Positions 2,546 to 53,355 of a stretch of DNA of 64,000 bases are shown one piece after another. The DNA lies in the NCBI GenBank assembly GCA_037379345.1, contig CM074512.1:15438001-15502000 (forward strand), in the 5' to 3' direction. Source of the stretch: Perna viridis (lineage: Eukaryota). Every line of letters begins with the position of its first letter. The stretch's first letter is position 1. The notes beneath the pieces are model-generated. The model had not been told where the DNA came from. It made no database searches and saw only the letters and a list, made by a program, of their open reading frames with translations. The translations under genes were made by a program, and so were the position numbers.

Positions 2546-5500
2546 ACTCAGATGTTTGTTTTTTCTTTTTATCTTGTAATAAGTTGCATCATGTGACAAT
2601 GTAGGTCAACAGCTTATATTGATCCTCGGACACATCTGTTTTAAGCATCGCTAACTCTGCAAAATCTTTAGTCCCCGTTGAGAGGCAAATGTCCTTTGCA
2701 ATGAAAATAACATACTCGTATTCGTTTGGCTTGTTTTAATTTTATAGCGTATTTATTGTTACCGGACTTAATAGACCCGGGCACTGGGTTTTAAACTCGT
2801 CAAATTTATTGATCTACGCATAAAATACACAATTTATTTACCAAGTTTGACCTTACGAATGTAAACTAGCCGGGGTTGTCTGTCGCTATAGTAATAGGTC
2901 TATATTGTCTGAAAACTAGCCAATGGCTAAACAATCTAACGTAACACGGAAAGAATTTTATACCTTTGTGTCAAGTGTCGATTACCTGAGTACATTTATG
3001 TCCATAATACACCTGAATTCTTTTTGTGAATATTACGTCATTTCTATCCACGTAGGTGTTAGCAATCTAGAATAGAATGGACACGAGATCGTTTGTGGTT
3101 ACATGTCTCATTTTAACAAATAAGCAGCTGAAAATATCCGAGTCATGAATTGGTTTTAAATCATCTTCAATATGAAAATGTAAATCAGAAATAATTTGTA
3201 TAGCTAGGTCATACATTACACCTATATGATGAATAATACATTTGATCTCGAATATTTGTCCTTGCAGGCTAAACAGACATGTATGTTATATTTTATGTAG
3301 TGATAGATTACATAACCTTGCTTTAAATGATGTTTAAACAAGCTCATATACGCATAAGGTCATGATTATAATCAACAACAATATGTTAGCGTTGAAAAGA
3401 GCAGTTTCCATAATCATCTGTTGTGATGACCAGCGTCATAACAAATGACCACTTGACCTACATATCCGGTTGTTAAGAGATCATTTTGGGATTGGCTAAC
3501 CGAGAAAGTTGTCCTTAGACTGAGGTCATTTTTTCTTAACGCCAGGTCATTATGTTTTCAATTATTTATAGCTACCTTAATCAGTAGTAAAGTTTAAGTA
3601 CAATTTAAGATAATAATACACCTTGGTCGAGTGACTGTAGAAACAGTTAATTTTTATGGTTGAAGAATCACAAAGTTATAACGTATGTCCGTGAAAAGAA
3701 TCTTGTCAAACAGGTGGATCACTTGTGATACTATCGACTTTACTCTGTGCCCCCATAATCGAAACATGGCATATCTTATTTAATATTTAGGTTTTGGTGG
3801 TCACTTTTCACGTTATGTCAACAGAACCATCAAGGTGACCATGTTACTGCCCGATATTACTGAGCTATTACCTCATTTCAGAATCGTGTTTACTGATACG
3901 CTTATGAAACACTTATTTGTACTGATTCCCTTCGGTAACCGAAATATCAATTTGTTATCAATACTTTGTAGTATTCATTATACAGTACCATCTGATGATG
4001 GAGTGATGCAGGACCTAATTAAGAAACATATGGGCTATCTATATCTCATGGTCATTTAAACAATGACCTGGTTGTGTGGGTTATTGACCGTTCTTTGGCG
4101 GTGTTCCAGATACACAAGAGGCACTTACTGGAATAGAATAAATGTAAATAACCTTTTTCTATGTTATTAAATAAACATTTGATGTACATAGATTGAATAA
4201 ATTAAAGCTCTGGCAATTAAACCGCTTCGATGATTTTAGATAATGAACTGGATATTTTAACTTAGATCACTACATCCTTTTCGTCATTTTAAAAAAAATC
4301 CAATGGTCATATATACGGCCAGTCATGGCATTGACATGTCGGTTAATGACACCACCTTTTTACTTTATTACTGTTAAATGCAGACAACATATATATGGTC
4401 ACTTCTGTCGGTTAGTTTTGTTATTTATGCCCTCATGACGGACTGTCTACATGGTCTGATGGTAATAGTCATTTATGATAATTATTATTCAAGTATTCAC
4501 TTTTTGTAGAATGCTTGTCAATGTTTATAAAAGTAAGTTTTAATTTGTAGAAAAAAAAACCTTTAAAAATGTTCAGGGGGTGAACATTGATATGACCAAA
4601 TACTAACCCCAGCTTGAGGACATTTTCTATAAGATAACGTTATCATTCAAATTAGGGATTTCATTTAAAGGCCATCGAATGCCATGAGATTGAAAGGTGT
4701 TCATCTCGTAGATTTTCTAAAAACACTCGCAGAAGTTATCATTGTGTAATATTTTTCCCATAGTCATGCTATATTAGCTCCTAGTGTAGCGGATTACTGT
4801 CACCGTAATTAGTCTACCTGAAAATGATATTACCAGTGTTCTCCTCCACTACATATAAACATCCTTTGTCCAAACAGTCAACCTTTTACATTTCGCTAAA
4901 CAAACTTTTTTGTGTAATAGAAAACATAATTTTGACACCACGAAGAATGAAATACGATTCTGATTAGGGTTTCATAATAATATTCATGGCTATTTTTTGT
5001 CCAGTGCCAGCTGCCAGTATGTAAAATAGGCTTGGTTAATAATCTGGTGTGTCGGACAGCTGTCGTTGTTAGTTACACAATAACATGCTTCTGGCATTAT
5101 GCACCCCCTAACGACTGTTGTCACCCCATGGATTATATCACTCTTTCAATTGCTAATTTTTTTCAATTGGCATCAAAGCCATTTTCATAATAGGTCACCC
5201 TACAAAATAAAAAGGGTCAATCCTTTGTTCGGGTTTAGCTTGGAAACTGAAGACGTCTTGGACTGAGTGCTTTGTTATTAGGTGTCAACGGCGTAATATA
5301 ATACAGAAAGCTGACATTCAATGGCCGATGATATATAATTAGATGTACATATTTTTTTTCTCGATTTCGACCAGTAATTCGTTTGTTACAATCCATTAAT
5401 ATATTTCTTTGAAATGACTGTCCAATGCTACACATTAGATTGACACGTAGCTACTCGGGGCTTTGTTCGCATTTAATGTGCTTTATATCCATTCAAATAA

Positions 5501-48694: not shown

Positions 48695-49303
48695 AACAAG
48701 AGGCTCCCAGGAGCCTGAATCGCCCATCTAGTTGAATTTTGCATTTCAACGGCAATAAATTAGACAAGAGTTGTCCAATAATTTTGACTCAAAAAGTCTT
48801 TGGTAGAGCTTATCATAAGGATCATTTCAACAATTGAAAGTTTCTTCTAATCTATCATAGTTTTCAAGATATTGACTGAAAACTGTTGAAAAAAAGGTCA
48901 TTTTTCCCCTTTCAAGGGCAATAACTCCTACAAGGAGTTATCTGACAACTTTTATCCCTGAAGACTTTTGTAGTCCTAATAATAAGGATCATTTCAGCTA
49001 TTGAAAGAATTTGCCTAAACCTATCGGTTTTGGAGATATATGCAAAAAACTACTGTCTGACCGCTATGTTCTATTTTTAGTAATGGTGGCCATGTTTTTC
49101 GACGAATCAAAAATCCCCACATCAGTTCTATGCAGGATACCTCAAGGAACATTTACACAAAGTTTGGTTCTAATCACTCAAGTAATTTCAAAGGAGAAGA
49201 GTTCTCCATATAATTGTTAACGACGACAACAGACAACGACGACGACGACAGACGCCAAGTGATTGCAATAGCTCACATGGCCTTTGGCCAGGTGAGATAA
49301 AAA
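48695..49303 (-). mobile_element. Non-autonomous Helentron/HINE element, copy 2
   Basis: aacaagaggctcccaggagcctgaatcgc ... (gac)n ... gctcacatggcctttggccaggtgagataaaa; A/T-run flanks, no TSD. Confidence 0.85.
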
Positions 49304-49634
49304 ACAGATGACTAATTAAATGGGAGACCCCGCTAACTCAAATTTATTGGAAGTCTGTATTGTGTACTTTGCAAGATGGGATGCTTAACAAGTAGAGTCA
49401 CAGGAAAAAATTGTCCCATCCCAATTCTTTATTTATACAAAAAGAACCATACTTTTGCATTTTCTATTCCAAAAAAATGATTTCCCATATGACATCTTGA
49501 AAAAAGAAGCTCCATCCCCTACTTAATGATAAATATCTGAAAATCAACTGAATTAGAATGCCCCAATAGCATTTATAGTCTTATTCAATGGTAAATTCAA
49601 AAATGTTGCTGAACATCTCATTTGTATATGGATA

Positions 49635-51762
49635 TTCAGAATCAAAAACCAACCTAAATCAGCATCTTCAACATCTATACTACTATTATAATCATCTGTA
49701 CCACTATTTCACTCATCTGTATCACTATTACACTCATCTGAACCACTATTACACTCATCTGAACCACTTTTACACTCATCTGAACCACTATCACTTTTAC
49801 AATCATCAGAATCAAAAACCTATCTAAATCAGCATCTTCAACATCTATAGGCTAAAAACCACTAATTCCACTTCCCATAGGCTTCTATGCTAATTTCACA
49901 ATATTCAATGGCTTCTCTGGACTTTACCTTAACTTTAACCTGCAGAGGACTATATATCAGCATGATTCTACATATGTCAGCTCACAATCCTCAGAATGGC
50001 ATGTGGGGTTAGCAGACTTGCAGTGCAGTACTGGTCACCGGAAGTGAAGGGTCTATAAATAGCATGGGAAATCCCAGTGTTTTCACAAGATAGCGGTATA
50101 TTTAAAAATCATTATGGAGATTAGGCTTCACATCACAAGAAGCAAAATGCACCTATAAAATGTACAGAAATGTTTTTCCTTTCAGAAACTGTTTAAATTT
50201 TTTAAATAAGATGAGAACTTTTTTCACGGCACTATGAGGAACAGGGGGTAATTTCTGTGTAGGACTATTTTTGCGTACGTTCCAAATGCTCATTGGTTGA
50301 ATTGGTGGTCTGTAACCTAAAGAGTCACTTTTTGTCTTAGAAAAAATAAATAACTATACAGGTATCTTCCTACACACATACTGAATGCATTTGCAAAGTT
50401 TCAGTGAAATGTGACAAGCACTTTTTTAAATATTTGATTTTTAAATATAGGGTAACCAAGTTGCGCGAGCAAAAAAGTGACAATATTCTACCATACTTAA
50501 ATGCATTAAATATTTGCAAAGAACTTTTTCTGACTTTTCAAATAAAAAAAATCAATCACAACTTGATTTTTAACAATATTAATAAAGAGATAGATTTAAA
50601 AGTAATCTTTTTCTGAGAAATTGGTCTATTTTTAAAAATTTATTTCTGGCATGCCTCCCCCTTTTTCTTGATCACATGTCAAAAATCCTAAATCTTTAAA
50701 TTTTCACAAAGGTGATATATTTGGCTTTAAATTTGTAAATACAGTGTTTTCACATTAAAACATGACCAGTAAAGGGCACCTAAAGCAAAAAAAGTACTCA
50801 ATAATGGATTTTCCATGTTGCCATAGGGGAATGCTTATATGGCCTTAACCGCAGTAATGAAAGTGAGTTTTTCCTCATTTCTAACCTAATTTTTGCTCAA
50901 ATCTACACAAAACTTGATTTCAAGTGCTTATTACCACCATATTTAGGTAAATATAGCCCTCAAAGTTTAATATTTGATATTTTTACTAAATTTTCTACAC
51001 TTTTTACAAGATAGGACATAAAAATCAGCCAAAAAGACCAATTTTCCATAATTTGGACCTATAACTTAAAAAAATACATATTTTGAAGGATTTTTGTAGT
51101 GTTTTCCTCTCATGGCAAAGTTAACAAGATCTTCCAGTAGTTTAAAGCTATTTCAAGAAACTTTTCATTTTGCCATGGCTTCAGCTTAAGGCTAAAAACC
51201 ACTAATTCCACTTCCCATAGGCTTCTATGCTAATTTCACAATATTCAATGGCTTCTCTGGACTTTACCTTAACTTTAACCTGCAGAGGACTATATATCAG
51301 CATGATTCTACATATGTCAGCTCACAATCCTCAGAATGGCATGTGGGGTTAGCAGACTTGCAGTGCAGTACTGGTCACCGGAAGTGAAGGGTCTATAAAT
51401 AGCATGGGAAATCCCAGTGTTTTCACAAGATAGCGGTATATTTAAAAATCATTATGGAGATTAGGCTTCACATCACAAGAAGCAAAATGCACCTATAAAA
51501 TGTACAGAAATGTTTTTCCTTTCAGAAACTGTTTAAATTTTTTAAATAAGATGAGAACTTTTTTCACAGCACTATGAGGAACAGGGGTAATTTCTGCGTA
51601 GGACTATTTTTGCGTACGTTCCAAATGCTCATTGGTTGAATTGGTGGTCTGTAACCTATACTACTATTACAATCATCCGTACCACTATTTCACTCATCTG
51701 TATCACTATTACACTCATCTGAACCACTATCGCTTTTACAATCATCAGAATCAAAAACCTAC
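49635..51762. repeat. Tandem copies of the CLASRP exon 6 / intron junction with 21-bp subrepeats, split by the composite transposon
   Basis: tcagaatcaaaaacc(a/t)a(c/t)ctaaatcagcatcttc(a/t)acatct at ~49636, ~49806 and 51745 (the real junction); subrepeat ccactattacactcatctgaa. Confidence 0.88.
49850..51656. mobile_element. Non-autonomous composite DNA transposon with long terminal direct repeats (KolobokP-like)
   Basis: Direct repeats 49850-50317 and 51190-51656 (468/467 bp, 3 differences), each bounded GG...CC with imperfect 19-bp TIRs; TATA duplicated outside (49846-49849, 51657-51660); TAAA and TTAA at inner junctions; 872-bp internal region without a convincing ORF. Confidence 0.88.
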
Positions 51763-51881
51763 CTAAATCAGCATCTTCTACATCTGTACCACTATCACTA
51801 TCATCACTTTCATCTTCATCTTTTAGTACAGGAGTACTGTCCTCATAAACAAAACCTATGGCAGCTTTTTTTCCTTCCAAC
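51763..51881 (-). CDS. CLASRP: CLASRP coding exon 6
   Basis: LEGKKAAIGFVYEDSTPVLKDEDESDDSDSGTDVEDADL; tatag / gtaggt. Confidence 0.92.
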
Positions 51882-53355
51882 CTATAAAAGCCAAGTTTCA
51901 TTTATCAGTTAGGACCAACAACTGTTTGAGGAAGCAATATAAAGTCACTATGGGGTAAATCTTCAATTATATATCTTGTAGGCAAGGAAAGACAGAATTA
52001 CAATCCACATAACCTGGTAAAGAAACCTTGAGGTTAGATGTTTTCACATCACATTCTTTTTAAAACAGACACCAGAAACACTGAAGAGATCTGATCAGGT
52101 ACATTTTTAAAGCATTTAATAAAGCATGTTTGTCATTTACTTTTAAATAAGCCTAATAGCTGACACAGGCAATTTCCAAACACTGTCCAAAAGTCAATTA
52201 TTAGAGTGAACAATGATTTTGATAGATGATCAATTAATGAAAATCTGAATCCATTAATCACCATCTAGAAAGTACAGCCATTCAACCACCAGAATACCAC
52301 TTATTATGTCTACAAGGTGTAAAGTAACAATATAATAGAATAACAAATGTTTCAAACCATTGGAAAAGGCACCTGAAGAAAATTGGCAAAAGTATGACAA
52401 TCAATACCAATACTATTTATCTCCATTACATATAGGTCAGTATATAAATATCTGCAATATATGTATAAACACTAGGCAAGTGAAAAGGCTACAGTATGGG
52501 TAACATATTATCTTAGGTATGTACTTATTGTAGCAAATACTGTTGAAAAATTGCTAAGTTCAACTGATAAAATTGCATATTAAATATATGTCAAATTGTC
52601 TATAATAAGTGTTCCATATCTTCAATATGTATATGTACACTTTGAATTATATTGGTTGTATAATTTTAGTATTATCAATTTTAAATTTCAAGTTGCATGT
52701 AATCCTCTCTCAACTAAGATAGGCACAGGACTACCGGACCTCTGTTTGTGCCTAACTTGAAATTTAAAAGATGCATTCACAAAATATTTTGTGGACTATC
52801 TTATTAATAAATCAAGTAGTCCTGTAGGCTACCTTGCAAGAAAAGTCAAACCCTGGCTAAGTGAAAAATAACTAGTGTTAAATCCAGAAAAGTTATCTGG
52901 ACAAATCCTACACAGACTAATGGAGCAAGGAAAGACAAATGAAGAATTAAAATGTCCCTCATCTTTAAGTTCATCAGTTCATTATATCAGATTTTTATAA
53001 ATCAAAATAAATATTGGAAATCAATAAGTTATAACACAGCAACAAAAACTGAAGTGCACATATCGCCACATGTCCCCTGCTGCTAGTGACATTTGAAGTT
53101 GCCAACATTTCATATCCCTAAAAAATTGGTGGGATTAAAATGGCAGTACAATATATATGCACATCTACAATACATTATAACAAAAAGCGAAGAAAACACC
53201 TGTGAGGTTTCAGAAAATAAGCATCCACGAGGAGTTGCAGATAGTTGGTCCTGTCCTGGCGTAGTATTAGGGGACAAAATCAATATAGTCTTTGAACTCA
53301 CATGTTTGTATATCGAGTAATATTTCCTTGTCCTCATTATTACAAAACATCTTAC

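Follow-up and report, generated by a model that had tools for sequence, protein, structure and literature searches.

KolobokP, a lineage of Kolobok DNA transposons, was defined by Kojima and Bao (2022, Mob DNA 13:24; PMC9587614). Its members consist of an internal region (INT, also called the core below) between a pair of long terminal direct repeats (LTDRs) of about 450 or 660 bp, and in Table S1 of that paper the LTDRs of the ~450-bp class span roughly 430–480 bp. Each LTDR has short inverted ends of its own (up to ~18–25 bp), with 5'-RR at one end and YY-3' at the other. Duplications of 3–5 bp surround monomers, solo LTDRs, and multimers. Solo LTDRs are frequent, and two types of multimer were described, (LTDR-INT)n-LTDR and LTDR-(INT)n-LTDR, the latter with a loss of 3–4 bp at the INT-INT junctions. 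According to the same study, an LTDR can be excised alone, and unequal exchange between LTDRs yields solo LTDRs and multimers. Autonomous members encode a Kolobok DDD/E transposase as well as a His-Me finger nuclease, which lies downstream on the opposite strand. A 1,807-bp element with the layout LTDR-INT-LTDR was analyzed in a 64,000-nt stretch of the Perna viridis genome (C2:15438001-15502000 of a 723-Mb assembly), which is called the window here and to which positions without a C label refer. With a probability of about 0.9, it is a single copy from a KolobokP family that is non-autonomous, i.e. a composite cut-and-paste DNA transposon of the Kolobok superfamily. All structural features of the published definition were found in it or in the other copies of its family.

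The element is composed of a left LTDR of 468 bp (49850–50317), an INT of 872 bp (50318–51189), and a right LTDR of 467 bp (51190–51656), all on the plus strand, and its LTDR length falls within the ~450-bp class. Alignment of the two LTDRs gave 99.4% identity, with two substitutions, both CpG transitions, and one 1-bp indel in a G run. The right LTDR equals the majority sequence of the sampled copies, from which the left LTDR has 3 private differences. Both LTDRs open with GGCTAAAAACCACTAATTC and close with GAATTGGTGGTCTGTAACC (plus strand, 49850–49868 and 50299–50317 in the left LTDR). These terminal inverted repeats (TIRs) match at 15 of 19 positions, as counted by eye, and carry the motifs GGC-N3-AAACCAC at the 5' end and GTGGTCT-N3-ACC at the 3' end. 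The termini GG...CC fit the RR...YY pattern. The tetranucleotide TATA is present on both outer sides of the element (49846–49849 and 51657–51660), and INT starts with TAAA (50318–50321) and ends with TTAA (51186–51189). The uninterrupted pre-insertion site acatcTATActact was found at 49671–49685 in the neighboring unit of a host repeat, with the intact TATA at 49676–49679. INT is non-coding. The longest open reading frame (ORF) within the element is a GTG frame of 70 codons, the LTDR holds no ORF of at least 50 codons, and no Rfam match was obtained for the element. A tblastn search with transposase and nuclease ORFs detected no coding remnants in the element, and INT showed no similarity to either ORF. 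The initial annotation of this locus had described near-identical direct repeats with inverted termini other than TG...CA, TATA outside and TAAA and TTAA at the inner junctions, a pre-insertion site legible in a sister repeat, and an internal region lacking transposase and nuclease ORFs; all of this was confirmed at the positions given here.

The element belongs to a family that is extremely abundant and young. A 32-nt pattern from the 5' end of the LTDR matched the genome 7,121 times at up to 2 mismatches, and the reversed control gave 0 matches. The pattern for the LTDR-core junction matched 3,443 times. As LTDR and core adjoin at 3,443 places, the arrangement does not reflect two chance insertions of miniature inverted-repeat transposable elements (MITEs), which had been named as the finding that would overturn the composite interpretation. 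Among the copies sampled from the genome, solo LTDRs, LTDR-core-LTDR monomers (on seven distinct stretches), a trimer-like LTDR-core-LTDR-core-LTDR copy, and long arrays with a period of 1,340 bp were observed. Examples of such arrays are C4:224392-236922 and C1:19175473-19207056, and tandem arrays of this period hold about half of the cores. In the LTDR-core-core-LTDR form, the LTDRs are spaced 2,207–2,208 bp apart, and the INT-INT junction in stretch L080 reads ...CAGCTTAAACAGTCAC..., with 3–4 bp missing. Matching 4-bp duplications were found at 9/11 sampled solo LTDRs and 5/7 sampled monomers (14/18 together), which lie at different loci and agree with the earlier expectation that the element moves whole or as a solo repeat. 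The duplicated tetranucleotides included TATA, TAAA, TTCA, TGAA, and TAGA, and they follow the pattern TNNA, mostly as TATA or TAAA; seven of nine additional flanks fit TNNA as well. The predicted 4-bp duplication of a TTAA-like target was thus upheld in its length, and the target itself has to be restated as TNNA rather than strict TTAA. A single TATA duplication surrounds an entire nine-unit array on C7. Sampled copies differed by ~0.5% from their majority sequence, in a sample biased to the best matches. A single non-coding KolobokP family can thus attain ~7,000 LTDRs and 3,400 cores, which by our own arithmetic amounts to ~6 Mb, or ~0.9% of the 723-Mb mussel genome. Annotators should mask it as one composite DNA transposon, neither as an LTR (long terminal repeat) element nor as a satellite.

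The termini were compared with published KolobokP sequences. Among the LTDR consensus sequences considered from Data S1 of PMC9587614, examples of starts are ggccccgagaccacaattaattcc (Mytilus coruscus), ggcctcagaccacaattaattt (Pecten), and ggccacaggtcactaattcttccccattgacttcaatgttaattc (Patella), and one LTDR end is ...aattggtggtctgcctcc. By eye, the studied LTDR and these published LTDRs have in common a 5' module, ARACCAC..TAATT..CCCAT.G.CTTC.ATG.TAATT, and a 3' end, ...AATTGGTGGTCT-N-CC or GGTGGTCT-N-CC. The resemblance extends over the consensus ends of Mytilus, Pecten, Mizuhopecten, Crassostrea, and Patella in that portion of the data, and about the first 45 and the last 20 nt of the LTDR can be aligned with KolobokP ends from several molluscs, as well as with a coding family found in this genome. 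Non-autonomous families such as KolobokP-N1_CorFlu and KolobokP-4N1_OwFu offer the closest likeness, with an LTDR-INT-LTDR structure, an LTDR of the ~450-bp class, and short imperfect RR...YY TIRs. Non-autonomous KolobokP families also share with the studied family the 4-bp duplication, solo LTDRs, multimers, INT-INT junctions that lose 3–4 bp, an INT bordered by duplication-like tetranucleotides, and the conserved terminal sequence. As judged by length, a 1,807-bp family with an LTDR of 468 bp is absent from Table S1, which includes three Perna viridis families, and an exact search of the supplements of PMC9587614 for the termini and the INT start of the family returned no matches. It is therefore a non-autonomous KolobokP family without an entry in the family table of the defining paper. 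The architecture itself was published in 2022, in line with the remark in the initial annotation that it is rare but already known, and no further principle emerges from this copy. Only the very high copy number of the family stands out: 7,121 LTDRs were counted here, in contrast to 2,693 for the largest family listed in Table S1, although the counting rules differ.

Coding relatives are present in the same genome. For the nuclease, at least 574 candidate matches to PF05551 (His-Me endonuclease zinc loop) were obtained; for the transposase, candidate matches to PF20700 (labeled Mutator-like in Pfam) numbered at least 660. Nuclease and transposase matches are in opposite orientation, and most belong to tandem arrays whose period is 3,971 or about 4,426 bp. 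Stretches L051 and L052 each contain an intact transposase frame (680–696 aa) and nuclease frame (157–160 aa) on opposite strands. The 4,426-bp unit carries an LTDR of 452 bp (L052:1780-2231) with the ends GGCACGAAACCACAATTAATT and ...AATTGTGGTCTCGTACC, and the 3,971-bp unit consists of this internal region and lacks the LTDR. The autonomous element (L052:1780-6657) of this 452-bp-LTDR family, which is probably KolobokP-3_PeVi, codes for both enzymes, the transposase with 696 aa and the His-Me nuclease with 160 aa. Over the stretch shown in the alignment of PMC9587614, its transposase is identical to the row ..._PeVi_1p, a P. viridis KolobokP. The motif GGC-N3-AAACCAC is common to the 5' ends of the studied LTDR, of the LTDR at L052:1780, and of the published KolobokP LTDRs that were compared, and GTGGTCT-N3-ACC is likewise common to the 3' ends (L052:2231 in the coding family). 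The studied and the 452-bp LTDR also agree in the C/T and A/G asymmetry of their two ends. Global alignment of these two LTDRs scored z = 5.5 against shuffled sequences, with the similarity mostly in the first 130 nt. Both families also form arrays with and without LTDRs. They differ in their TIRs, which match at only 11 of 19 positions, and in INT, which is unrelated and has the ends TATTA...TATTA in the coding family rather than TAAA...TTAA. Longer copies with a DDE transposase and a His-Me nuclease had been predicted. Such copies exist in related families of this genome, but none with the studied LTDR was found. These related full-length elements encode the two enzymes and not gag, reverse transcriptase, or integrase, whose presence in full-length relatives the initial annotation had named as refuting.

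The state of the locus in other samples was assessed with Logan contigs from four runs (X17, X1, X2, and X3) over positions 49300–52200. Run X1 derives from the organism itself and X3 from an invertebrate gut metagenome. In each of them a single contig (2,970 and 3,158 nt, respectively) joins 49697 directly to 51679. Both contigs skip 1,981 bp, corresponding to the element, one copy of the duplication, and one 170-bp unit of the host repeat. The contigs from X17 and X2 stop at the repeats, which is compatible with a filled allele and is no proof of one. Because the X1 and X3 contigs bypass the element, the locus is polymorphic for it. The low divergence among the sampled copies fits the young age proposed earlier. 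In the joined unit of X1 and X3, the left-hand variants are those of host unit 1 and the right-hand ones those of host unit 2. Two origins fit the skipping allele: a one-unit allele in its pre-insertion state, or deletion between the host repeats at a later time.

A short non-coding core with a long direct repeat on each side and a 4-bp duplication would also be found in a miniature non-autonomous LTR retrotransposon, of the terminal-repeat retrotransposon in miniature (TRIM) or large retrotransposon derivative (LARD) type, whose direct repeats were made by reverse transcription. TRIMs also show solo repeats and repeat-sharing tandem arrays, and in the studied family variants are often common to both repeats of an element. 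However, the ends are GG...CC with a 19-nt inverted repeat and not TG...CA, and the sequences that adjoin the repeats, TAAAGAGTCAC... and ...GGCTTCAGCTTAA, resemble neither a primer-binding site nor a polypurine tract. The core-core junctions, where a single repeat is lost and 3–4 bp are missing, fit excision and not reverse transcription, and the termini share homology with LTDRs of DDE transposase-encoding elements. An origin by reverse transcription is therefore regarded as extremely improbable. What the family does have in common with TRIMs and solo LTRs is its dynamics, that is, solo repeats and repeat-sharing arrays that arise by unequal exchange of direct repeats; the differences from LTR retrotransposons are the lack of an RNA intermediate, of TG...CA, and of both priming sites, and repeats that have inverted ends of their own and can be excised. 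We give no more credence to a 1.35-unit fragment of a 1,340-bp satellite that reached this place through segmental duplication or ectopic recombination instead of transposition. Tandem arrays of this period do hold about half of the cores, but monomers at unrelated loci are always bounded precisely by the LTDR termini, mostly with matching 4-bp duplications, and at the present locus TATA is duplicated and the sister site intact, which indicates a clean insertion.

A composite built from a TIR element of another superfamily, such as piggyBac, Sola, or another MITE of the Kolobok lineage, might have converged on the appearance of KolobokP. An A/T-rich 4-bp target is not exclusive to Kolobok, and an autonomous partner with the same LTDR was not found. 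On the other hand, the LTDR of 468 bp lies within the narrow ~450-bp KolobokP class, the terminal alignments described above link it to mollusc KolobokP ends and to the coding family of the same genome, and the complete set of derived forms matches KolobokP. For piggyBac, a strict TTAA target and CCC...GGG ends would be expected, and the observed duplications are varied (including TATA, TAAA, and TTCA) and the termini are GGC...ACC. Convergence of this kind is considered very unlikely. Bacterial composite transposons (Tn10 and Tn5) and the IS26 pseudo-compound transposons are organized similarly, with two small TIR elements bracketing a passenger and with either the whole or one arm being movable. 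In contrast to these, the arms are only in direct orientation here and encode no transposase, and the coding relatives hold the enzyme in the internal region, whereas the arms of bacterial composites are transposase-encoding insertion sequences (IS). The studied element is a eukaryotic Kolobok and not an IS.

Several observations weigh against the explanation of the element as a non-autonomous KolobokP copy. The census was built on short, nearly exact patterns and not on a full annotation. An autonomous element with the studied LTDR type was looked for and not found, a point in which the family also differs from the published KolobokP. BLAST searches with the LTDR and INT against the DNA around ~20 nuclease loci revealed similarity only at one nested insertion, and a fuzzy TIR search near nuclease genes yielded no partners. 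When the studied LTDR was sought abutting the INT ends of two autonomous families, chance-level matches or none were obtained. The low TIR identity to the 452-bp-LTDR family, given above, speaks against that family as the helper. At the locus itself, the allele in X1 and X3 also lacks one 170-bp unit and has 52 nt of identity at its joint, and it may be a later deletion instead of an empty site.

What was observed comprises the layout of the element, its duplications, the forms of its copies, the homology of its ends, and coding relatives in the genome, and a mechanism of the following kind would account for these findings. The unit of LTDR (468 bp), INT (872 bp), and LTDR (467 bp) is inserted at TATA with a 4-bp duplication. 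The element encodes nothing, and a Kolobok DDE transposase would be supplied in trans. Each LTDR is a small TIR element in itself with GG...CC ends, and the transposase could therefore use either the outer pair of ends or the pair that belongs to a single LTDR. Acting at the two outermost ends it would move the whole unit, and acting at both ends of one LTDR it would move or excise a solo LTDR. Homologous exchange between LTDRs would produce solo LTDRs and (LTDR-INT)n arrays. Solo LTDRs may come mainly from transposition or mainly from recombination. The most likely source of transposase would be the abundant autonomous 452-bp-LTDR family of the same genome, which is the best helper candidate because of its end layout and asymmetry, its 4-bp duplication class, the alignable first 130 nt, and its hundreds of intact transposase frames. 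Mobilization in trans by this family is nevertheless a guess from sequence comparison.

The LTDRs of seven monomers in the L001-L030 sample were compared for traces of the copying mode. Both LTDRs of one monomer share variants that distinguish elements from each other (columns 189, 229/442, and 435), and divergence was 0.6% within an element and 1.0% between elements. Variants restricted to the left or to the right LTDRs across these copies, as expected under rigid end-to-end copying, were not found. In this small sample, the pattern fits new monomers being drawn from homogenized arrays or from a one-LTDR intermediate, and it points to homogenization by either route before or during the spread of the family.

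Directly abutted LTDRs form a further type of array, of which the main text of PMC9587614 makes no mention and which sets the studied family apart from the published ones. The head-to-tail LTDR-LTDR arrays may be new. A pattern of LTDR end, 0–12 nt, and LTDR start matched the genome 65 times. The largest number of junctions was recorded in the array at C6:9058423-9086367, with 41 junctions, a period of 475 bp, and the spacer TAAATTAA. The array at C7:4819960-4836270 has 8 junctions and a period of 1,809 bp (LTDR-core-LTDR-TTAA), and all of it lies within one TATA duplication (the arrays on C6 and C7 correspond to stretches L081-L084). At C2:10466608-10467582 the period is 471 bp and the spacer is TAAA, as at several other loci. 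The core opens with TAAA and closes with TTAA. Because the spacers correspond to these terminal tetranucleotides, the junctions look like a precise loss of the core in which one or both tetranucleotides were kept. The spacer TGTA in stretch L085 equals the outer duplication there, and this junction has an origin separate from that of the core-loss spacers. In the X17 contigs, the TAAATTAA junction had a depth of 2,505 at a single-copy depth of ~92, and it was not reported in X1; a junction with the spacer TAAAA reached a depth of 1,940 in X1 and was high only in that run. Because the depths differ greatly between individuals, the LTDR-LTDR arrays of this species are variable, either in their form or in how many copies are present.

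One tentative and rather unlikely explanation is that the LTDR-LTDR junctions are chromosomal footprints of a transposase that cut the two inner ends of LTDR-INT-LTDR, with loss of INT. The two LTDR ends would then have been rejoined, each retaining its 4-nt flank. If this were true, the junctions would record the 4-nt staggered cleavage by a Kolobok transposase, and the LTDR excisions behind INT-INT junctions would be their reciprocal counterpart. The junctions would moreover reveal a birth route of LTDR-only satellites, such as those with the 475-bp period on C6 and the 1,809-bp higher-order period on C7. Integration of circle junctions, of the type proposed by Kojima and Bao, would explain them equally well. 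Nearly uniform in sequence and polymorphic between individuals, the family is a good natural system for studying the interconversion of solo LTDRs, monomers, and arrays, the possible part of circles or inside-end cuts, and the choice of transposase for orphan families.

The insertion site lies in a 170-bp tandem duplication with internal 21-bp sub-repeats (49636–49849 and 51661–51901). Unit 1 (49636–49805) contains the uninterrupted target site, and unit 2 is split by the element into 49806–49849 and a second part from 51661 to ~51790. An acidic open frame on the minus strand (...DEDESDDSDSGTDVEDADL, 51656–51901) ends at a donor-like site, GTAGGT, and the 170-bp duplication repeats the end of this frame together with its GT donor-like site. 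Judged from the open frame and the donor-like site, the element is probably located in an intron, just downstream of a putative minus-strand exon.

Two candidates for an autonomous copy with the studied LTDR were rejected. Stretch L053 on C1, with an LTDR spacing of 4,054 bp, contained only ORFs of up to 102 codons and represents two separate insertions. A core copy that adjoins a nuclease gene on C13 (L062/L067) proved to be a nested INT-LTDR insertion. This copy in L067 lies inside the 5' TIR of the LTDR of another family, has TACAA on both sides, and lacks the left LTDR, which corresponds to the 'INT-LTDR' form of PMC9587614. The surrounding stretch (C13:22373500-22381800) belongs to a second autonomous family, whose DNA is ~70% identical to that of the commonest one and whose copies are clustered on C13. 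Its LTDR ends are GGTACGAGGACAC... and ...GTGATCTCGTACC, and the transposase is split into three frames there.

Very long tandem arrays of an autonomous KolobokP family were also noted at C8:43.88-44.43 Mb, C15:25.74-25.89 and 26.48-26.64 Mb, and C3:32.616-32.627 Mb. They contain intact 696-aa transposase and 160-aa nuclease frames, and the 3,971- and ~4,426-bp periods are mixed within single arrays. In a region of ~100 kb (C2:60461470-60566558), stop-free His-Me nuclease frames of 125–163 aa recur every ~919–923, 1,838, or 4,417 bp, and the region looks like a satellite composed mostly of the nuclease gene. The LTDR start of the published KolobokP-2_PeVi matched the genome 1,149 times at up to 3 mismatches. 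It was found in arrays with a period of 3,890 bp and with shorter periods of ~1,718 and ~1,047 bp (e.g. C10:8268459-8284044 and C1:495026-513942), and the shorter periods suggest further abundant non-autonomous derivatives.

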